Shown piece after piece: positions 11,963 through 45,089 of a DNA stretch of 46,981 nt. The position numbers and the translations under genes are program-made. The DNA is from Macrostomum lignano (lineage: Eukaryota). Within the stretch, counting starts at the first letter, position 1. Every line of letters starts with the position of its first letter. The stretch spans positions 1-46,981 of the forward strand of contig NIVC01004405.1 in assembly GCA_002269645.1 (NCBI GenBank). Direction: 5' to 3'. The notes under the pieces are model-generated. The model was not told the DNA's origin. It did no database searches and saw only the letters and a program-made list of their open reading frames with translations.

Positions 11963-12513
11963 CAGGGGTCGGCAAGCCCCCTTCGGGGGGAGAAGTGGAG
12001 AGAGGAGAGGGGAGGAGATGAGAGAGGAGAGGGGAGGAGATGAGAGAGGAGAGGGGACGAGATGAGAGAGGAGAGGGGAGGAGATGAGAGAGGAGAGGGG
12101 AGGAGATGAGAGAGGGGAGGGGAGAGAGGAGAAGGGAGGAGATGAGAGAGGGGAGGGGAGAGAGGAGAAGGGATGAGATGAGAGAGGGAGGGGAGAGAGG
12201 AGAAGGGAGGAGATGAGAGAGGGGAGGGGAGGAGATGAGAGAGGGGAGGGGAGAGAGGAGAAGGGAGGAGATGAGAGAGGGGAGGGGAGGAGATGAGAGA
12301 GGGGAGGGGAGGAGATGAGAGAGGAGAGGGGAGGAGATGAGAGAGGAGAGGTGAGGAGATGAGAGAGGAGAGGGGAGGATATGAGAGAGGGAAGGAGAGA
12401 AAAGAAGAGATGAGACACAAGCCTTGAGCTGCTCGGATTGCTATTCTGAAGTATCAAAGGACCCGAGGCCCAGATAGAGGCTTCGCGAGCCGGAGTTTGC
12501 AAGCCGACCCCTG
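11963..12513 (-). mobile_element. hAT/Charlie-like MITE copy C (inverted) with ~430-bp GA tract
   Basis: Perfect 11-bp TIRs CAGGGGTCGGC/GCCGACCCCTG; 8-bp TSD GCTTAGAG/GGTTAGAG (7/8 match). Confidence 0.9.
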
Positions 12514-12805
12514 GGTTAGAGGGTGTTAGCTGTTGCTGAGCATAAAAAGTGCTCACAGGGGAATTTTTCTCATCAAAGGAAACAAGTGCTATTTCTTAGA
12601 AGTTCTGTGAGACCGAAGATGAAGAAATGGGGTTCTTGCTACATAGTTGGCATCTCTGAAACCAACGAAAATGTCTGGTTTGGGGTGGATACAGAGCAGC
12701 TCACCGGTGACTTGTCTGACTTTCGCGGCAAAGTACGAGCTAACCTCTGCGTTTGATTCCGTGTGCAGTTGCATTAAGTTGAATTGCATCGTGCTCGAAA
12801 ATGGG

Positions 12806-17171: not shown

Positions 17172-18256
17172 GTGGATAGAACTAGACAGATGGATGAGAT
17201 TAGAACTAGACAGATGGATGAGATTAGAATTACACAGATAGATGAGATTAGAACTAAACAGATGGATGAGATTAGAACTACACAAATGGATGAGATTAGA
17301 ACTACACAGATGGTCGAGATTAAAACTACATGAATGGATGAGATTAGAGCTACACAGATGGTCGAGATTAGAACTACACAAATGGATGAGATTACAACTA
17401 CACAGATGGATGAGATTAGAGCTACACAGATGGATGAGATTAGAACTACACAGATGGATGAGATTAGAACTACACAGATGGATGAGATTAGAACTAGACA
17501 GATGGATGAGATTAGAACTACATGAATGGATGATATTAGAACTACACAAATGGATGAGATTAGAACTACACAGATGGATGAGATTAGAACTACACAGATG
17601 GATGAGATTAGAACTACACAAATGGATGAGATTAGAACTACACAGATGGATGAGATTAGAACTACACAAATGGATGAGATTAGAACTACACAGATGGATG
17701 AGATTAGAACTACATGAATGGATGATATTAGAACTACACAAATGGATGAGATTAGAACTACACAGATGGATGAGATTAGAACTACACAAATGGATGAGAT
17801 TAGAACTACACAGATGGATGAGATTAGAACTACACAGATGGATGAGATTAGAACTACACAGATGGATGAGATTAGAACTACACAGATGGATGAGATTAGA
17901 ACTACACAAATGGATGAGATTAGAACTACACAGATGGATGAGATTAGAACTACATGAATGGATGAGATTAGAACTACACAAATGGATGAGATTAGAACTA
18001 CACAAATGGATGAGATTAGAACTAGACAGATGGATGAGATTAGAACTACACAGATGGATGAGATTAGAACTACACAGATGGATGAGATTAGAACTACACA
18101 AATGGATGAGATTAGAACTAGACAGATGGATGAGATTAGAACTACATGAATGGATGAGATTAGAACTACACAAATGGATGAGATTAGAACTAGACAGATG
18201 GATGAGATTAGAACTAGACAGATGGATGAGATTAGAACTAGACAGATGGATGAGAT
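17172..18256. repeat. 21-bp minisatellite (GATGAGATTAGAACTACACAG/A-type)n
   Basis: Direct reading; generates the spurious MRLELHRW and MDEIRTTQ ORFs. Confidence 0.95.
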
Positions 18257-18732: not shown

Positions 18733-20165
18733 TACAGACACTGAGAAGAGATGGAAGTGTCTACCTTGACTACCTACAGACACTGGGGAGAGATGGAAGT
18801 GTCTACCTTGACTACCTACAGACACTAGGTAGAGATGGAAGTGTCTACCTTGACTACCTACAGACACTGGGGAGAGATGGAAGTGTCTACCTTGACTACC
18901 TACAGACACTAGGGAGAGATGGAAGTGTCTACCTTGACTACCTACAGACACTAGGGAGAGATGGAAGTGTCTACCTTGACTACCTACAGACACTAGGGAG
19001 AGATGGAAGTGTCTACCTTGACTACCTACAGACACTGGGGAGAGATGGAAGTGTCTACCTTGACTACCTACAGACACTGAGAAGAGATGGAAGTGTCTAC
19101 CTTGACTACCTACAGACACTGGGGAGAGATGGAAGTGTCTACCTTGACTACCTACAGACACTGGGGAGAGATGGAAGTGTCTACCTTGACTACCTACAGA
19201 CACTAGGGAGAGATGGAAGTGTCTACCTTGACTACCTACAGACACTGGGGAGAGATGGAAGTGTCTACCTTGACTACCTACAGACACTAGGGAGAGATGG
19301 AAGTGTCTACCTTGACTACCTACAGACACTAGGGAGAGATGGAAGTGTCTACCTTGACTACCTACAGACACTGGGGAGAGATGGAAGTGTCTACCTTGAC
19401 TACCTACAGACACTAGGGAGAGATGGAAGTGTCTACCTTGACTATCTACAGACACTGAGAAGAGATGGAAGTGTCTACCTTGACTACCTGCAGACACTAG
19501 GGAGAGATGGAAGTGTCTACCTTGACTACCTACAGACACTAGGGAGAGATGGAAGTGTCTACCTTGACCATCTACGGACACTGAGGAGAGATGGAAATGT
19601 CTACCTTGACTACCTACAGACACTGGGGAGAGATGGAAGTGTCTACCTTGACTATCTACAGACACTGAGAAGAGATGGAAGTGTCTACCTTGACTACCTA
19701 CAGACACTAGGGAGAGATGGAAGTGTCTACCTTGACTACCTACAGACACTAGGGAGAGATGGAAGTGTCTACCTTGACTATCTACAGACACTGAGGAGAG
19801 ATGGAAGTGTCTACCTTGACCATCTACGGACACTGAGGAGAGATGGAAATGTCTACCTTGACTACCTACAGACACTGGGGAGAGATGGAAGTGTCTACCT
19901 TGACTATCTACAGACACTGAGAAGAGATGGAAGTGTCTACCTTGACTACCTACAGACACTAGGGAGAGATGGAAGTGTCTACCTTGACTACCTACAGACA
20001 GTACGGAGAGATGGAAGTGTCTACCTTGACTACCTACAGACACTGAGGAGAGATGGAAGTGTCTACCTTGACTATCTACGGACACTGGGGAGAGATGGAA
20101 GTGTCTACCTTGACCATCTACGGACACTGAGGAGAGATAGAAATGTCTACCTTGACTACCTACAG
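18733..20165. repeat. 42-bp minisatellite (~34 units) with an internal hairpin in each unit
   Basis: Unit GACTACCTACAGACACTAGGGAGAGATGGAAGTGTCTACCTT; stem AGACACT/AGTGTCT. Confidence 0.95.
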
Positions 20166-20784: not shown

Positions 20785-21220
20785 AGATCTAGATCAAGCA
20801 GATACTGATCTAGAAGATACTGATCTAAAAAATACTGATCTAGAAGATACTGATCTAGATGATACTGATCTAGAAGATACTGATCTAGAAGATACTGATC
20901 TAGAAGATATTGATCTAGAAGATGCTGATCTAGAAGATACTGATCTAGAAGATACTGATCTAGAAGATACTGATCTAGAAGATACTGATCTAGAAGATAC
21001 TGATCTAGAAGATACTGATCTAGAAGATACTGATCTAGAAGATTATCCAGATCTAGAAGATTGTAATCAAGAAGATTTAGATCTAGAAGATCCAGATCTA
21101 TAAGATCAGATCTAGAAGATTCAGATCTAGAGGATCCAGATCTAGAAGATTCAGATCTAAAAGACCCAGATCTAGAAGATCAATATCTAGAGGATCAGAT
21201 CTAGAAGGTTCTAATCTAGA
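20785..21220. repeat. 15-bp minisatellite (GATACTGATCTAGAA)n
   Basis: Direct reading; gives the DTDLE-repeat ORF. Confidence 0.92.
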
Positions 21221-21560
21221 GTGATATAAAAATTGTTTGTCAATTTCTAGATCGGGCAATTCATTAATTTATCTGCATTCACACGCTGCACAATAACCAA
21301 GGCCGAATCTGTCCCCACGGGACACAGCCGCCTGTTGCAATCAGAGAGCCACAAAATTCAATCTCCCTCCATCAGTTCTCCCTCTTGGGTCGATGAGTCT
21401 TTTAAGAAAGACCAGCGGACTGAATTTAATCCATCCAGTCCGCCCAAGGACTCACGCCTCACCACTCATCAGCCTCTAATTTTAATCCAATCCATGTTTG
21501 CCTGGTCGGACTCTTTCCTCCATATTCTAGCCTCTTTTCAAGGTGAAGGAGAACAAGACA

Positions 21561-21668
21561 CATGGATGAGATTAGAACTACACAGATGGATGAGATTAGA
21601 AGTAGACAGATGGATGAGATTAGAAGTAGACAGATGGATGAGATTAGAACTAGACAGATGGATGAGAT
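21561..21668. repeat. short second array of the 21-bp minisatellite
   Basis: Same unit and orientation as 17172-18256. Confidence 0.9.
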
Positions 21669-23565
21669 TAAAAATATATTTGGTTGAAGTGGAACACAGC
21701 AATAATTTTTATGCATTAGAAACCGGAGCAGCTGTGATTCACACAAGTCCTTCACGTGATGCACCAGATTGCGAACTGTATCTAAAATATGTTTTATTTC
21801 GGCATGTATTCTTTCAAAGATTCGACAAGCCCGAGCATGCAGCGATGGTTACTTGGAAGGGGAAATAAAGCAAAGCGTGGCCTCCCCTCCCTTCCTTAGC
21901 CCTGGGTGGTGATACGGACATGGTATTCACGCTTCATATCACACTCAATCTCGCTCTCACTCACTCCCCCACTCACTGGAGGCCGTCAGTGTAACAAGAA
22001 GCAAGGGACTCGGGTTGGACCTACTTGCATACTACTTTGCGGCAGACGCGAAAGCTAAAGGGATACCCAGCTTTAGACAGGCAGTACGGGAGCGGGAAGA
22101 GGGAGCTCCACTCTACAGCGCGTTGGAAATGCAGTTAATCACGATAGAAGCTGAGAAGAAGCCGGCGAGAGACATTTTGCTCTCGAGCCACCAAACTCAA
22201 ACCCGAGTCCGCCTCCCCCCCCCCCCCGCTACTCAAATAGTTCTCAATCCTCTCGCGCAAGACCTGGCAAGGCCAGGGACTACCAGAGAGACTTATCTGA
22301 ATCGTCTGTCTAGAGCACAAGTTTGAGCACCATCTTATTGCAGATAAAATGTTTCTGTATAATGTGAAGACCTTTCTGCTGAGGTCGTTGCGGAGGCCGG
22401 TCCGTGTGGGCCCGTGTTGAGTTGAGCGAGTTAAATAAGTCTGGAAGCTCACCAGGAAATATTTTACTATGCATTGAAAAAAAGAGATTTGCTTCCATAA
22501 ATTTTATAAACATAAACCAACTCTAACAATATTTCGCACGTTACATTGCATTATAACAAAATAAGGTAAGCCCCGAGCCCTCCAGAATTCCAGTTTAAGA
22601 TGTCCATGCCTGAGCTGCTCCAGCTTCCGTGCCCTTGTCCATCCATCCATCCATCTGAGGCTGAGAGCCTCATCGAATCTACTTCCATCCCTCACTCACT
22701 CGCTCTCTCCCTCATCTAAAGCGGTTTTTTACAGACTCTCAATATACATTACCTTACAGCGGCTCCTTGAGGAACTTCGGCTCTTCCCAGTAAAGTAGGT
22801 TGGGAGCAAAATTGCTCTTTAAAATACATCCAGGACGGAAGAGGATGGCTATCCAATGCGGGATCCAATGGTCTCTCTTCAATGCAGGAGTCCTGCGCCG
22901 GTGTAGCGAGAAAAAGCAGCAACTTCGGAGAGCTTCAAGCATTCTATTGCTTTGTAAAGTTTGGTTCGGTTTGAGTAGTCAGAACGCCCCCTCATCCGGA
23001 CCGTAAATCACTGGAGAGTAGAGATACCGGTGCGCTCGCTTATCAGCCCGCTCTTCTTCGACCTTGGAGAATGCAATCAATAATGTCTGGCAATCAATTA
23101 TCAGAACTTGGTCAGAACTTTCAGACACTCGCCGAACTCGCTTGATTTTCTCCCACCCAGCCCCCTCCCGCCGACGGCAATCAGCGCAGTTGAAGAAGTC
23201 CGACTTGAAGAATTCGATTGCCGCACTGCGGACTGCCCGCCATCTTCCATCTTGTGCCGCAAAGAGAAATCAATTTACCTCACCTCAGCCTATTCTGTCA
23301 GTTTCTGTCCACCCCTTTGCTTCGATTATCAAATAACTGTTTCGTTTCGTGTCGACAGCTTTGTAGAGCCAGTGGAAAGCACACATTCATTTGGAAAGAA
23401 AGAAAATACGAAAAAAATTAGAAATACAGTTCGCTCATATTCGAAGAAGTATTTATTCCGCAATCATTTTCGGAATAGGCCCTAGTTACAATATATGACC
23501 AATAAAGGCTTCTACTATAATAAATTATTAATTGATAACAACTGTTTAAAAAACAAAAGTCTCAG

Positions 23566-34225
<10,660 letters not shown>

Positions 34226-34551: not shown

Positions 34552-34875
<324 letters not shown>

Positions 34876-35267: not shown

Positions 35268-35436
35268 TTATAAGTCGGCCCGAATAAGTACAAACAGGTT
35301 GTGCAGGTAAATGCCTTTATCCGTGTAGTTCAAACTGTTCAGCCCATCCTTGTTCATAACGGCTCTGACCCGGCTCCAGTGAGGCCAGGGCATTGTGTTA
35401 GTAATCACGTCGCTCGAATGCTTCAGATTAACGAAC
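35268..35436 (-). CDS. GT7 glycosyltransferase exon 3 (terminal)
   Basis: RFVNLKH...DGLNSLNY...LFVLIRADL*, matching the B4GALT C-terminus. Confidence 0.88.
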
Positions 35437-35516
35437 CTGAAATGTTCGCGAGTTTATAGTGAAATGATAGTCATAGCTAAACGGGACATCTTGTCTTAAA
35501 TTCATCGGTCTCCTAC

Positions 35517-35806
35517 CTGGCCACGTGGCCTCTAGGGTAGAAAATTCGCATCCCGCGGAGCCCCAGCCGAGAGGCCAGCTCGTCGTCCTCCCTGCCCCAT
35601 CCGTAGTACCGGTTTGAGTTGCCATTGACTCTCTCGAACGCCTGCTTGCTGATTGCCGCCGAGCCGCCAAGGAAATTGTTGTACATCCGGCCTCGATGGT
35701 ACTTCTGGGTGGCGTCCCCCTCCTGACGCATAGCCGAGATCATCAGCTTCGGCGAACGGACGCAGTCGTAGATGTTGCCGACATTCTCAGGCACTTTGTC
35801 TGCGTC
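35517..35806 (-). CDS. GT7 glycosyltransferase exon 2 (catalytic core)
   Basis: DxD as (H)DAD; FLGG; NGNSNRYYGWGREDDE. Confidence 0.92.
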
Positions 35807-35977
35807 CTGATCGAGGGAGCGGGTTTTTGATATCATATCAAGTCAGGCTGTCTGGGTGGTTAGATACAAATTATTTGTCAGTCAGATGTTCCACTAAAAT
35901 AGATGCACATTATAAAGAAACAAATCTCAATGTACATTCACATTTAAGCTACACAACAGATCAGTCAGGTGTAAAGG

Positions 35978-36280
35978 AAGGGTTTTGTAGCCTAGAGGTT
36001 AGAGCATCGGACTCACGACTTGAAGGTCGGGGGTTCGATTCCCGATCCAATTGAAACAATCTGTTTCCTTGAGCAAAGATACTTAACTCTGAATTGTTTC
36101 AGTTCACCCAGCTGTATGATGGGCTGGTGTAATTGAGGGTGTATGTGGCGACCCCCCAGTCCTTGGACTCAACAGCCGTACGCAGCCTTCAGATGCGCCC
36201 CGCTATAGCTGCGGCTGAGCTGTCGGTTGCACACCTGGCCCAACTGAGCAGGTGTAATCAATTATTATTACTATTATTAG
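35978..36280 (+). mobile_element. tRNA-derived SINE family B
   Basis: A box TAGCCTAGAGG, B box GGTTCGATTCC, central CCTTGAGCAAAGATACTTAAC, (ATT)n-like tail. Confidence 0.85.
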
Positions 36281-36503
36281 TTCAAGCATCTTGACGATTA
36301 TTTTTCACATGCATGCATTTTCAAATAGTCAATAAAAACCCCTTCCACTTGGGTCATTTAGATGTTAGGCCTACTGTAGACAAGTACAAAACAAAGCACA
36401 TTCTGGTTTTGACTTTGTGATTTTTGCAGTGTCCAAAAAGCCCTCCTTACGAGCTAATTAACTAGAATGATACGAAGCCACGGATTCATAAAGATCTACT
36501 TAC

Positions 36504-37286
36504 GTGCAGCACGAAGCAGTCAAACTTGGCAAACTGTTGGGCCACTCGGAAGCCAACGTTGAGCAGTTTGGCGCGGTTGAACAGCTTCGTATTCGCCTGC
36601 TCAATCACGAAGATGCCGTAGGCGATGTTCTGCTGCTGCAGCAGGGTCTGCATATAGGGCACGAACTTGTCGAGATTCTCGCTTCGGTTCCGGTACGGCA
36701 CCAGGACGGCGGTTTTCGACAGCGGCGGCCAGCAGCTCCTGGGCGACCAGAAGCCGCCTCGGTAAGTCGGTCGAGCAAACGGAAAGCTGGAGGTCGGCTG
36801 GTTCAACAGGTGGGCCAGGTTCTTGTCTGGCGGACGGCGGCAGGCAGACAGATTCTTTGCGGTGTTGTTTGGCGCGTTTAGAAGATTTGGAGCAACCGCG
36901 GCTGGCGATTCGGTCAGCTTGGTGAGATGTCGGTAAAGCTGCGGGTAGACCATCTGGAATCGCTTCCAACCAGTCGAGTTGCCTGACTTTGAGCTCGGCA
37001 CCAGCATAGCGGCCAATTCGTTGAAGGGATCAAATCGGAGCCCTGTTGAGGTCGTCGGTCGAAGATTCTTCCTCCACGAGTTGTCTCGACGATTTGTATC
37101 GTTAAAATCACCACCGCTGTAGCTATTGACGAGCCGGAACGGCAGCCAGGCAATTTCCTGACTCAGTTTGCGACCCCTGACGGAGCCGGTCTGACCAGCT
37201 GTCATCAGCAAGACGAAGGTCAGGCACAGAGCGCACAAACCGATGATGACGCTCTGCTTGCGAGTCAGGGCGCGAGACTCCGTCAT
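36504..37286 (-). CDS. beta-1,4-galactosyltransferase-family (GT7) type-II Golgi enzyme, exon 1 (413 aa in total)
   Basis: N-terminal TM SVIIGLCALCLTFVLLM, stem region, AVLVPYRNR and FNRAKLLNVGF motifs; phase-0 donor GTAAGT. Confidence 0.92.
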
Positions 37287-40467: not shown

Positions 40468-43400
40468 TCAGGCTGGCGCGGTGGCGCCGGTCCCGCTGCC
40501 GGCCGCTTTGCACAGCGTGAGAACAGCACCGATGGCCAGCGACAGCGCGGCGGCCGAGCACACGACAGCGCCGAGGCCGACGAGCTTGCGGAAGCTGGAC
40601 AACTGGCTGATGTCTGCGCCAGCAGCGCCTTTGCTTTTGAGTATTGCAATGATGCGCTCGCAGCCAGCTATGCGGCAGGTGACGTTCTCCAGACCGCTTC
40701 CCGGACACGTGACTGATTCGGCGGCTGACGGAGCTGGACAGTTGCACAGGCGCTGGCGGTACATGAAGCCGCTGTTGAACGGCCCGGCTGTGAAATTGCC
40801 CCAAGGACACCAGGCTGCTGGAGCAGAACTCGTTGATGCAGCGCCGGTGGTGGACGCTGGGGTCGTGGTGGCGCAGGCGGTTGCATTGCACGGATAGTGC
40901 TCGACTGAGACGCCCGAGCAGGCGACTCCGATGTCATTGGGTGCGGAACAGTTGCACTGTCGGGTGCGCGACACCGCACCATAGGTGTATACGAGTTCAG
41001 ACCAGGCGCACCAACTGCCATTTACCTGAGCCAGCCAATCTGTCGTGTTACCTTGACACGTCTCTCCCAGTACTGACGCGGGTGGGCACTCGCAGGTTCG
41101 ATTCCGGACGCCCCAGCCGCCTTCGACGGTGTAGTTGCTCCAGGCGCACCAGCTACCGTTGACAATCTGGCGCGTGTCCACAGCCGAGCCGGGGCAGACA
41201 GTTGAACCTCCAAAGTCGCCGCCAGTCGGACAGCTGCAGTTTCGCTGTCGGGTCTCGTTGCCAGACCCGTCGGCTGCGTAGGCGGACCAGGCGCACCAGG
41301 TCGCGTTTATAGAGAGGCCAGACTCGGTCGAGTTTCCCGAGCAGACAGCTGAGCCTCCGTGGGCTGGCACAGCAGGACAGGCGCAGCTGCGGTTCCGCGT
41401 GCCAACGCCGGTGGCAGGGTCGACAATGTAGCTGGACCAGGCGCACCAGGCTGCGTCCTGCTTCAATCCGGTGTCGTTTCCACTTCCGGAACAGTCGGTG
41501 CCCCCGAAGGCCACAGCCGGACAGTTGCACGCCCGAGTTCGTGTACCGTAGTCTCCTCCAGGTGACAGGGTGTAGCTACTCCAGGCACACCAACTACCAT
41601 TAATCACCACCTGAGTCTCATTGGCAGCTCCGATGCAGTCGGCACCGCCGTATGCCGGGGCGGAGCAGTTGCAACTTCTCGCTCTGGTACTATTAGCGCC
41701 AGACACTATGTAGGGTCCCCATGGACACCAGGTGCCGTTAACTACCCTCTGAGTCTCACTAGCATTGCCTGGACAGGGTTGGCCGCCGAACGCGGGCGCT
41801 GAGCAGTTGCAAAGTCGCGAACGGTTGCTAAACTCCCCGTTGACTTGATAAGCGCTCCATGCGCACCAGCTGCCGTCCACTGCGGAGCCCGATTCGGTTG
41901 CCGAACCAACACAGTCCACGCCGCCGTACTCAGCTGCACTGCAGTTGCACTGACGCGTTCTCGTCCCGACGCCACCAGCCACAGAGAAGGCACTCCAGCC
42001 ACACCAGCTGCCATTGATGACTGTGCCAGAGTCGGTTGCTGGTCCTGCACAGTCGACACCGCCGTACGCTGGTTTGCTGCAGTTGCATTGTCGTGTTCTT
42101 GTTCCAACCCCTCCTGTCACTGAATAGGCGCTCCATCCGCACCAGGTACCATTAACGACCGTACCAGAGTCAGTGCCAGAACCGGGACAATCAACTCCGC
42201 CGTACGATGGTGAGCTACAGTTGCACTGACGAGTTCTAGTCCCGATGCCGCTGGACACTGCGAATGCACCCCAATCGCACCAGGTGCCGTTCACTGCCGT
42301 ACCGGAATCGCTAGCGGAGCCGACGCAGTCGTTGCCGCCGTACGCCGGAGCGCTGCAGTTGCACTGTCGCGTTCTAGTTCCAACTCCAGAAATCACAGAG
42401 AACGGGCTCCAACCGCACCAGCTGCCGTTAACGACAGCTCCTGAGTCGATGGCAGACCCGGCAGTCTGTACCGCCATACGCTGGAGCGCTGCAGTTGCAC
42501 TGACGTGTCCTAGTGCCGACGCCTGAAGCCATGGAGAAGGCGCTCCATCCGCACCAGCTACCATTTGTTACCAAACCCGTGTCATTTCCGCTGCCAGGAC
42601 AGTCCAATCCGCTGTTTGCCGGTGCCGGGCAAGCGCAGGCGCGAGTCCGGGTGGCAAAACCTCCGCCTGCCGGTGCGTAGGCAGACCACGGGCACCAAGT
42701 CCCGTTGACTACTGCCCGCCATTCGGTGCTGTTTCCCTCGCATGTTGTGCCGTTGCCAGCAACGCTCGGACAGCTACAGTTCCGTTCGCGCATCTGCCAC
42801 TCGCTGCTCACTGTACTCCAGTCGGTCCAGTTGCACCAGCCGCCGTTGATGTCTAGCTGGTCGCATACGTTCAAATTGGACTTCTCCAGATCGGAGATCT
42901 CTTCGAATAGCCATACAGTAGGAGTGCTTGATTGCAGAGTGAGCACAGAGTAGCCGCTGACAGTGCTTGGCGCCAGGAAGTATCCGGCAGTATCGTTGAA
43001 CGAAGATTTTATTGTGTACAGTCCACTGCCGCCACTGCCACCGGCTGAGTCAACAATCCAAAATTCGCGTTCTTTTGTTATGTTCTCAAAAGTGGCGTCT
43101 GCAACATCGGAGGACCAAGCGTCAGCCGGGGTGTAGCATGGCACAACGCTTCTGAAGATGAAGAAACCGTTAGGCTGAGGCATGGCCTCCCACATGACTG
43201 CGGCTTCGGTGCTTGGAGCGGTCAGAGCCAGTCGTCGCGAACCGTAAGCTGCCAGTGGAGCTGTGGAATTCGCCGCGGCAATGCTAGCGTTACAAAAACT
43301 TCCGCCGCTGCCGCAGCCAGTCTGCAGGTAGATCCTGTAAAAGCCCCAACGTAGCGCGAGTGTCTTGATGCCAACGTAGCTTCTGTAGTAGGGGCAGAAT

Positions 43401-44154
43401 CGGATGCGCTTATTGGGCTGGTAGTAGCGCTCTGTACTGCACCAGATCAGGTACCAGGGAAAGCCGGCCCCACTGGTGCAGTCGTCGTAACACTTTCCAT
43501 TATAGTAGAATGGAAAAGTACAGTTAGCATAAGGATCAGCCTGGGTGTATATGACGGAATAGCTGCTCAGCTGCGGCGTGATGTAGGCCGGCTCTGATGC
43601 GTTAAGCCGGGCGCAGCTCTGCGATGCCGCACCAGAAATTGTATAAGCGCAGTATTTGAAGTTGTTATCGATGATAGCGCTCTCTGCAGTGGTGGCGCAC
43701 CACGGCTCAGTTGTAGTGGTCAGGCAGTCATAGTGACACTTGCCGTTATACAGAAACGGGAACACACACTTGGTCCCGGAGCCGAGGCCAGCGTAGAGTA
43801 CAGACGGCTCGGAACTCTGAGCCGCGGTTGCCAGACCGGAACAGTTTTCCTGCGTCAGGTTCGCCAGCCGATAGTTGCAGTATCGCCACAGGGTGCTGCT
43901 GGCGCCGTAGTCGCAGGAGGTCGCGCACCAGAAGCGGCACTGGCCGCTCGAGCAATACTCGGTGCAATCGTTGTAAGTGTTGGAGCCGTCCGCAAATGGG
44001 AAATAGCAGACGCTGCCTGAGCCGCCCCCAGTGGTAGAGATGTGACTCTGCTGTCTGAAGTTGAGTTGGGGGGATTGCAGCTGAGCGCTAGGGAAATCTG
44101 AATCAGCAGCAAGAGAAGCAGGGGCAGCAGACGCTGTCCAACTGTCAGGATCAT
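40468..44154 (-). pseudogene. intronless type-I membrane protein gene: signal peptide, 3x FN2, probable beta-trefoil, 15x short TSP1-like repeats, TM; two frameshifts (pseudogene or assembly error), ~1228 aa if repaired
   Basis: ATG 44154 with hydrophobic leader; FN2 motifs CYFPF/CVFPF/CTFPF...WC; WCxW...RxRxCxC repeats; TM LVGLGAVVCSAAALSLAIGAVLTLC; TGA at 40470-40468; frame breaks at ~44038 and ~42460. Confidence 0.8.
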
Positions 44155-45089
44155 CTTCGAGTCTTTTTTATTCAATGATGTATTTGTCTTCGATTCGAGC
44201 GTAGCAGCGTAGCGGTGCAGTTTATATAATTTTTCGAATTGCTAAACCCATTATAAAGCCCCTGTGGATTTTGTCACACATTGTTCTTCGAGGACTGCAA
44301 TAAGCATCAATGCAACCATTGCCTCATTAGATTAAAAGAACAAAATTGAGTACGAGATAGGCAAATAATAGAAGGCAAAAGGCTCCACTCGAGCCTGGAG
44401 TGTCCCACTTAGACTAATGGATGCTGAGTGCATTGCCTGCATCGCTTGCGCTCGAATTGGCCTGCCTGTGCACTCCTGGCCAACGTTTCAAGTACCACTG
44501 CGACAATGGGGGGTTGCGAAGGAGAGTGATGAGGCAGCGCCGCAGGGTGCTGAAATGGAACAGGTGATTTGCCAATTAACAGAGGCGCGAGAACATAACA
44601 GGGGGCCCAGTTAGAGTGACATGCCTTTCGCACAATGCCTTGCAGGCTCGGCTGCAGAAACTGGCAGCCCGTGAGAAAGAAGCCCTGTTGAAAATAAGCT
44701 GCGTGCGACCGTTTCCACTTATTTATCATCTCATTCCGCCTGCCTAAATACGTCAGGCATGGCTTCAATAAAAACAAAAGAAGCAAAAGGACTTTCAGTT
44801 TGAATTTTTTACAACTCTTGATGTGAAATCTTCTTTTCTTGAGCGAAGCGCTCGCCTTTCCGTTTAAACTGGAAAACACTTGTTTTATTATATAAGTTTC
44901 CAATGAGACTTTGACAGCTTTGACAAGCCACCAATGCGTACGTGACTGCAGATCAATAGATGAACCATTAGATAAAAAAGGTTTGAGATTGAGTACTCGT
45001 ATATGAATGTCTTTATTGGACTTTAAGGTTTGCTGCAACTACAGAACTGCCTAGCACTTTGCAACTGATATTTCAATGTTCGAGAAATG

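Follow-up and report, generated by a model that had tools for sequence, protein, structure and literature searches.

A third, twice frame-broken paralogue in a Macrostomum lignano family of predicted FN2-TSR membrane glycoproteins

What kind of protein is specified by the minus-strand locus at positions 40468-44154 of the Macrostomum lignano contig NIVC01004405.1 (assembly GCA_002269645.1), and does this copy of the gene still make it? The window, by which the whole analyzed stretch of 46,981 nucleotides is meant, had been described in an earlier note from its letters alone, and that note had proposed a stalked surface protein with three fibronectin type II (FN2) modules, a β-trefoil and fifteen short thrombospondin type 1 repeats (TSRs). 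The analysis presented here indicates that the locus is probably a paralogue in an M. lignano gene family, encoding a stalked type I glycoprotein that would serve as a passive anchor to collagen or other extracellular matrix (ECM), and that its reading frame is broken twice.

In the mechanical list of open reading frames (ORFs), three long overlapping ORFs could be identified on the minus strand, one in each frame, at 43855-44175, 42428-43765 and 40468-42564. These three are fragments of a single coding sequence. Three-frame translation gave one intronless coding sequence running from 44154 to 40468 on the minus strand, which encodes a type I membrane protein of 1229 amino acids (aa) once its frame has been repaired. 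The ORF as it stands is not intact, two frame breaks joining the three frames, and apart from these two indels no in-frame stop was found over the 1229 codons. No introns were found in the coding region, which is colinear throughout with those of the paralogues in the M. lignano gene groups Mlig009063 and Mlig014498, so the absence of introns that had been claimed for these 3.7 kb was confirmed. The repaired protein contains 90 cysteines and 48 N-x-S/T sequons, a count in line with the heavy N-glycosylatability suggested previously. Only two segments exceed a Kyte-Doolittle value of 1.6 (19-residue mean), namely the signal peptide and aa 1192-1215, and a C-N-P motif that follows the signal peptide is kept in the paralogues. 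From the upstream side to the stop codon, the following features were assigned:

44223..44228, minus strand: TATA-like element TATATA, about 74 bp upstream of the ATG; a consensus match from a motif scan and a candidate promoter
44080..44154, minus strand: start codon ATG and signal peptide, aa 1-25, MILTVGQRLLPLLLLLLIQISLALS (translation; hydropathy)
44025..44029, minus strand: frame break 1, a G5 run that is 1 base short of the open frame, placed by alignment of the paralogue N-termini; the alternative site is a C6 run at 44068-44073
43877..44008, minus strand: FN2 module 1, aa 50-93, divergent and with three extra cysteines (Pfam fn2 21.4 bits, E=2.6e-4, profile 1-42)
43649..43768, minus strand: FN2 module 2, aa 130-169 (Pfam fn2 42.2 bits, E=7.7e-11)
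43394..43522, minus strand: FN2 module 3, aa 212-254 (Pfam fn2 36.1 bits, E=6.6e-9)
42851..43393, minus strand: orphan β-rich, cysteine-poor middle domain, aa 255-435 (about 180 aa), a possible ricin-like β-trefoil
40873..42850, minus strand: fourteen tandem short TSRs, aa 436-1095, each about 46 aa long and containing 4 Cys and 2-3 N-glycosylation sequons
42457..42461, minus strand: frame break 2, CCGGG inside TSR3 (YGGTDC/PGSAIDSG), two bases short or one too many
40816..40872, minus strand: Thr/Ser-rich linker, aa 1096-1114, from its sequence a probable O-glycosylated hinge
40660..40815, minus strand: TSR 15, aa 1115-1166, membrane-proximal and conserved in Mlig009063 (P0001)
40513..40584, minus strand: transmembrane (TM) helix, aa 1192-1215 (Kyte-Doolittle maximum about 2.3; position common to both paralogues)
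40468..40512, minus strand: cytoplasmic tail of 14 aa, CKAAGSGTGATAPA, plus the TGA stop
40470-40468, minus strand: stop codon TGA

The three FN2 modules that had been predicted could all be identified. C-x-F-P-F, W-C-[AS]-T and the terminal cysteine are present in each of them, and the fn2 profile (PF00040) scored 42.3 bits in three stretches when the whole protein was searched (cut-off 22.2); of the single modules, 2 and 3 exceed this cut-off, and module 1 matches the full 42-position profile marginally below it. Module 3 is the best-conserved part of the family. All modules contain extra cysteines, and in each of them one of these lies in a G-K-C-x-Y-D-C motif (44008-43394), while the linker in front of each module contains one conserved cysteine (N-C-S; S-C-A). 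Taken together, the extra module and linker cysteines suggest a third disulphide per FN2 module, which would make these modules six-cysteine, kringle-like variants. The best non-flatworm match to the N-terminal half of the protein was ELSPBP1, a sperm-binding protein with four FN2 modules (E=1e-21, 30% identity). FN2 was long considered vertebrate-specific, and the earlier statement that it is best known from chordates is correct. Its occurrence in free-living flatworms is nevertheless already on record, since FN2 modules of turbellarian flatworms were reported in a study that called their presence outside vertebrates unexpected (PMC3435950) and several planarian FN2 proteins were mentioned in another (PMC6211748).

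Arrays of three to four FN2 modules like the triplet found here occur in the collagen-binding domain of the gelatinases MMP-2 and MMP-9 and in ELSPBP1/BSP, which, in contrast to the window protein, are soluble proteins or protease inserts. Compared with the gelatinase and ELSPBP1 modules, those of the window protein are separated by Cys-containing linkers of 36-42 residues and have at least one extra cysteine each.

The stalk contains exactly 15 W-C-x-W units, of which 14 form a tandem array with a spacing of about 46 aa and one follows the Thr-rich linker at aa 1096-1114, so both the number of repeats and the linker had been recognized correctly in the earlier note. A TTTTS linker equivalent to the Thr-rich one is present in Mlig009063. 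At the DNA level, Tandem Repeats Finder detected a 138-bp period at 41852-42565. The Pfam profile TSP_1 (PF00090) matched a five-repeat segment in 5 stretches with 49.7 bits (E=4e-13). From the window protein and its two paralogues 29 repeats were aligned; W4, C5, W7, R19, C23, C25, C35 and G37 do not vary among them, and R21 is conserved in at least 90%. When the resulting repeat profile was compared with all PDB sequences, TSR2/3 of thrombospondin-1 was matched with E=1.1e-17, and further matches were obtained to UNC5 (UNC5B 6e-7), the complement components C6-C9, BAI1, ADAMTS13 and properdin. As judged from these profile matches, the repeats can be assigned to the true TSRs as a reduced variant with four cysteines.

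In comparison with thrombospondin-1, the motifs W-x-x-W, R-x-R, C3 and G-G-x-x-C4-x-G are kept in these repeats, and with them the Trp/Arg ladder and the C3-C4 disulphide, whereas a deletion of 3-5 residues has removed the CSVTCG hairpin with its two cysteines, and the partner cysteines C5 and C6 are lost as well. Two cysteines are gained: one is the residue next to the first Trp on its C-terminal side, and the other, two positions past C3, creates C-x-C. The standard six-cysteine TSR pattern is absent, and four cysteines (C5, C23, C25 and C35 of the repeat) are invariant instead. The CSVTCG hairpin of standard TSRs is a POFUT2 O-fucosylation site and a CD36-binding motif; the O-fucosylation site is gone in the window protein, while the C-mannosylation motif W-x-x-W is retained. 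In the TSR fold, strand A begins beside the end of strand B. Therefore, we infer that the two new cysteines pair with each other, so that the Cys after the first Trp would form a new disulphide with the second Cys of C-x-C. The conserved W-x-x-W, R-x-R and G-G-x-x-C-x-G motifs are likewise found in proteins with a TSR stalk (THSD7A/B, UNC5, semaphorin-5, BAI/ADGRB and the apicomplexan TRAP/MIC2); in these, as in thrombospondin-1, the repeats have six cysteines and a period of about 55-60 aa, compared with four cysteines and 46 aa here.

Pairwise dN/dS values were calculated for the seven most regular repeats. dN was 0.1-0.2 and dS was saturated; omega was about 0.05-0.14 when the five most similar repeats were compared with one another and 0.24-0.40 once either of the two more divergent ones was involved. 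These values indicate that the TSR array is old and has long been under purifying selection.

Between TSR 15 and the TM helix lies a juxtamembrane segment. The TM helix and the minimal tail had both been noticed before; the tail was then counted as 13 residues and is counted as 14 here, a number that varies with the TM boundary. Its sequence differs among the paralogues (CRQASTGSAF; NRIVQSRRSVGSSTEAS), and no motif could be recognized in it, whether of the Tyr or di-Leu type or of another.

When the full-length protein was searched against 5.8 billion clusters, only two clusters were matched, both from M. lignano and 45-46% identical to the window protein. They correspond to the gene groups Mlig009063 (g1 and g2; entries PAA73206.1, PAA54962.1, A0A267E2T2 and A0A1I8FYL0, P0001/P0011) and Mlig014498 (g1-g3; entries PAA56683.1, PAA55111.1 and A0A267GYT2, P0002/P0013), which share 47% identity with each other. 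Both are labelled as hypothetical at NCBI and as "Fibronectin type-II domain-containing protein" in UniProt. One UniRef entry of the family was automatically named "Protein-tyrosine-phosphatase" and contains no phosphatase domain, and another is fused in a 2735-aa model. The order of domains is identical in all three proteins (signal peptide, three FN2 modules, orphan domain, four-cysteine TSRs, TM helix and short tail), and all cysteines of FN2 module 3 and of the middle domain are kept. The proteins differ in the number of TSRs, which is 8 in Mlig014498, about 10-11 in Mlig009063 and 15 in the window protein, and Mlig014498 lacks the Thr-rich linker and the final TSR.

The same database of 5.8 billion clusters contains no protein that is near-identical to the window gene. 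Therefore, the window copy is regarded as a third, unannotated paralogue, which appears to have been overlooked by both public M. lignano annotations. No tandem paralogue was found within the window or in locus L001, and no description of the family was found in the literature under the locus names or as an FN2-TSR protein in Macrostomum. Judged from the database matches, the family is restricted to Macrostomum lignano and uncharacterised, and its sequence type is already present in the databases. The suggestion that the gene belongs to a multi-copy family is thereby borne out by two paralogue groups, whereas the view that no known protein combines these domains has to be given up, as the identical architecture is public in the uncharacterised Mlig009063 and Mlig014498.

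In contrast to the window copy, the reading frames of Mlig009063 and Mlig014498 are intact. Both frame breaks of the window copy lie in a G/C homopolymer context, and runs of this kind are a typical site of long-read consensus errors. At break 1, addition of one G to the G5 run gives CNPPNSTSDSRVTSLPLGGGSGSVCYFPF, which has the same length as the Mlig014498 (P0002) N-terminus, CNPASSVPDPRVGVVDYPGTAGDSCYFPF; because the alignment with the paralogue N-terminus fits the added G, the G5 run is preferred to the C6 run as the site of the break. The sequence context of break 2 is GACTGCCGGGTCTGCC, and restoring CCCGGGG there gives YGGTDCPGSAIDSGAVVNGSW, with D-C-P-G-S as in the sister repeats. Long-read consensus error and very recent inactivation of a redundant copy are roughly equally probable as the origin of the breaks.

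Three observations weigh against the reading of this locus as a gene for an FN2-TSR anchor. FN2 module 1, with 21.4 bits, stays marginally under the Pfam gathering cut-off of 22.2 bits for fn2. The absence of the gene from both M. lignano annotations may mean that this copy is untranscribed. Finally, the neighbouring β-1,4-galactosyltransferase-like (B4GalT-like) gene contains 0 frameshifts over 297 codons; therefore the assembly does not seem to be grossly error-prone in this region, and real mutations are somewhat favoured. It is thus a serious possibility, only somewhat short of an even chance, that the window copy is a young unitary pseudogene whose frameshifts are real, so that no full-length protein is translated and the paralogues are the only functional members. 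Two independent frame breaks would fit such a history, as would the fact that the gene is missing in both public M. lignano protein sets while its B4GalT neighbour, itself free of frameshifts, is annotated in three near-identical copies. The many redundant copies in the partly polyploid M. lignano genome would also fit. On the other hand, the two breaks coincide with G/C homopolymer runs, and neither a stop nor a further lesion was found across 3.7 kb. Purifying selection on the repeats is strong, and nothing is damaged in the signal peptide, the cysteines or the TM helix.

For the preferred reading, a protein that is or was until recently produced from this locus, the likeliest function is that of a surface anchor which binds collagen or other ECM and is raised on a rigid, glycosylated stalk, and the stalked ECM-binding surface protein envisaged in the earlier note is a reasonable proposal from the module content. 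The FN2 triplet at the membrane-distal tip would bind collagen or denatured collagen-like (gelatin-like) ligands, as in the gelatinases, and the middle domain could add another binding site, perhaps one for glycans. Fifteen disulphide-stapled and heavily N-glycosylated TSRs and a Thr-rich hinge open to O-glycosylation would make up the extended stalk, which is presumably stiff and would lift the FN2 triplet and the middle domain clear of the glycocalyx. The tail, which is tiny, unconserved and free of Tyr or di-Leu motifs, points to a passive role as an anchor, an adhesion molecule or a co-receptor rather than to one in signalling or efficient endocytosis. Collagen binding is proposed by analogy with what FN2 does in MMP-2/9, in the mannose receptor and in Endo180; that FN2 modules bind collagen is established (PMC6211748, refs 144, 145).

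How the protein relates to known receptors of similar build was considered for two groups. Members of the mannose-receptor family (MRC1, MRC2/Endo180, PLA2R1 and LY75) consist of a ricin-type cysteine-rich domain (CysR), one FN2 module, a stalk of C-type lectin domains (CTLDs), a TM helix and a short tail. The window protein resembles them as a type I protein in which FN2 stands beside a (here putative) trefoil at the distal end, followed by a repeat stalk, a single TM helix and a short tail. It differs from them in having three FN2 modules instead of one, in the order of the distal domains, which is reversed in the mannose-receptor family (CysR then FN2), in a stalk built of TSRs instead of 8-10 C-type lectin domains, and in its tail, which has none of the endocytosis motifs carried by the tails of that family. 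No CTLD was matched by Pfam in the window protein, and because of this it is not considered a member of the mannose-receptor family. THSD7A shares with the window protein a short tail, a TM helix and an extended array of TSRs; the TSR differences described above set the two apart. From its domain content, the window protein can be described as a modular ECM-binding surface glycoprotein that belongs neither to the mannose-receptor family nor to the THSD7A type. More speculatively, and with a probability well below even, the family could have arisen in flatworms by convergence on the mannose-receptor and Endo180 type of receptor for collagen and glycans. A highly diverged or new trefoil lectin would then act jointly with the FN2 triplet, and the four-cysteine repeats of 46 residues would be a new minimal class of TSR with a rewired disulphide and without the O-fucosylation site.

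Much of what can be said about lectin activity depends on the middle domain. The motifs of the W-centred region of about 165 aa pointed out in the earlier note, MWEAMPQPNGFFIFRS, FWIVDS...LYTIKS and VWLFEEI, are present within aa 255-435. No Pfam family, including the ricin-type families PF00652 and PF14200, matched the middle domain of any of the three homologues at E<=10. When 1.84 billion representatives were scanned in full with HMMER, no relatives beyond the two M. lignano paralogue groups were identified; no middle-domain homologues were found in two JGI metagenome scans, and a word-indexed search with the N-terminal half returned generic FN2 proteins only. The members of each cluster are identical across the middle domain and added no diversity to the alignment. 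Structure prediction, which had been proposed as a check, gave unusable models: two AlphaFold2 runs on an alignment of 3 effective sequences resulted in a mean predicted local distance difference test (pLDDT) score of 41.2 and 34.9, with strands only in both models, and a Foldseek search with the first model returned noise (E>1).

Some sequence comparisons lean towards a ricin-type trefoil. The only PDB sequence matched by the domain profile at E<=10 was the ricin-B lectin 9s11_A (E=0.7), on three of its lobes, and only about 92 of the 177,635 PDB sequences, 9s11_A included, match the ricin profile at E<=0.001. Searches of the PDB with the profile, with a single-lobe profile and with each of two single sequences together produced six weak hits, none of them significant and two of them trefoils; a Kunitz inhibitor, that is a Kunitz-type trefoil, was among the weak single-sequence hits, and the non-trefoil hits included BamC, the CNA collagen adhesin and VP8*. 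For hhalign, ricin-type domains verified with Pfam were used as reference. In this alignment EREFW / G-x-Y-T-[IV] / W-x-F-E were in register with Q-x-W / x-x-I / Q-x-W, the confident register being limited to the C-terminal third; the comparisons gave P=0.09 and P=0.027 at a probability of 0.6-1.8%, and the observed score was reached by 3 of 100 column shuffles. An internal three-fold repeat was not detected, as lobe-versus-lobe hhalign comparisons were not significant (probability <=1%). The window protein has three W-centred motifs; in the paralogues the first of these Trp residues is replaced by F or missing, and the Q of the (Q-x-W)3 pattern never occurs. The β-trefoil claimed in the earlier note is therefore unproven, the likeness to ricin being suggestive, and on these comparisons the chance that the middle domain is a β-trefoil appears slightly better than even.

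If it is one, the protein might be read as an endocytic lectin similar to the mannose receptor, in which the trefoil and the FN2 modules capture glycoconjugates or collagen for uptake. The match to 9s11_A, the motifs that align in register, the Kunitz-type trefoil among the weak hits and the strands predicted in both models would agree with such a role, but every one of these comparisons falls short of significance, neither a three-fold repeat nor a Pfam match was found, other weak hits are not trefoils, and the first W is lost in the paralogues. The tail, too, is unconserved and has no Tyr- or di-Leu-type endocytosis motif; an endocytic lectin of this kind is considered unlikely, and the passive ECM anchor is retained as the preferred function.

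A last question is whether the missing introns could reflect retroposition, as the earlier note had proposed. The paralogue Mlig014498g1 is likewise intronless (2622 bp for 873 codons), and in Mlig009063g2 the penultimate TSR (TSR14) is interrupted by a genuine intron, about 125 bp long, at ...GYGVLTR/TRLCNCS.... This intron, at 12670-12805 of NIVC01002830.1, splits the region of the R-x-R motif, and the UniRef model A0A1I8FYL0 has a shortened, garbled TSR, GGRLYRFQLPWQFTDSLTQV, which looks like a frame error of the gene model. That the window copy is a processed, retroposed copy of an intron-containing parent gene is very improbable and unsupported by these data, since its lack of introns next to intron-containing neighbours and beside the intronless Mlig014498g1 is opposed by the absence of a downstream poly(A) tract (longest A-run 6), the absence of a target-site duplication (no flanking direct repeat >9 bp, the sole common flank word being a 9-mer), the TATA-like element upstream of an intact signal peptide, and the intron in TSR14 of Mlig009063g2, because of which the family cannot be uniformly processed. 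Synonymous divergence is saturated among repeats and paralogues; therefore, any retroposition would have to be ancient, with its hallmarks erased.

The B4GalT-like gene (Pfam Glyco_transf_7N/7C) is located at 35271-37286 on the minus strand, 3.5 kb from the FN2-TSR gene. Its three exons in the aligned part (36938-36504, 35809-35516 and 35438-35271) agree with the intron-rich neighbourhood described before. The frame runs upstream to an ATG at 37286 and includes an N-terminal TM anchor. Compared with M. lignano A0A1I8IH22 the gene shows about 99.7% identity, with a single mismatch at an exon junction, a match that assigns the window to this flatworm, and its three near-identical UniProt copies are consistent with partial polyploidy. 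Farther along the window, exons of a Slo/BK-type calcium-activated potassium channel were identified at 24981-27369 on the minus strand (BK_channel_a 28.7 bits; Slo-like_RCK weak). Slo-like ORFs overlap there in different frames, which look like short introns and ordinary exon-intron junctions and not like frameshifts, and one of these ORFs contains a Gly/Ser-rich low-complexity insert, GGSGSNGGNGGG.

The window is unusually dense in minisatellites, which occupy about 1/6 of it. Arrays are found at 5865-6787, 7393-8580, 17177-18256, 18733-20165, 20792-21220, 28684-29541, 31192-31796 and 32331-32673, with periods of 19, 25, 24, 42, 15, 30 and 30 bp, 10-48 copies and 85-94% identity. The 24-bp unit occurs again at 21550-21670, and the 30-bp unit of 31192-31796 is found again in diverged form at 32331-32673. 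Low-complexity blocks at 9217-10144, 10919-11212 and 11987-12398 comprise long CT-rich polypyrimidine arrays on the plus strand and a GA-rich polypurine array about 1.8 kb downstream. The polypyrimidine and polypurine blocks form an inverted pair with extreme GC and AT skew, the GC skew being -0.82 at 9-10 kb and +0.47 at 12-13 kb. A second inverted pair, of microsatellites, consists of (CAGA)n and its complement (TCTG)n at 33746-33939 and 34556-34875, about 600 bp apart.

Current M. lignano annotations thus omit at least one member of this family. M. lignano is a tractable model for regeneration and bioadhesion in which in situ hybridisation and RNAi are routine. If the family is functional, it would represent a lineage-restricted ECM receptor made of old modules and the first FN2-TSR membrane architecture. 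Its repeats would then be a natural minimal TSR, showing that the fold can do without the CSVTCG hairpin, without the POFUT2 site and with one disulphide of the usual three left, and its middle domain would be an orphan extracellular domain that has no relatives among 1.84 billion representatives outside its own family.

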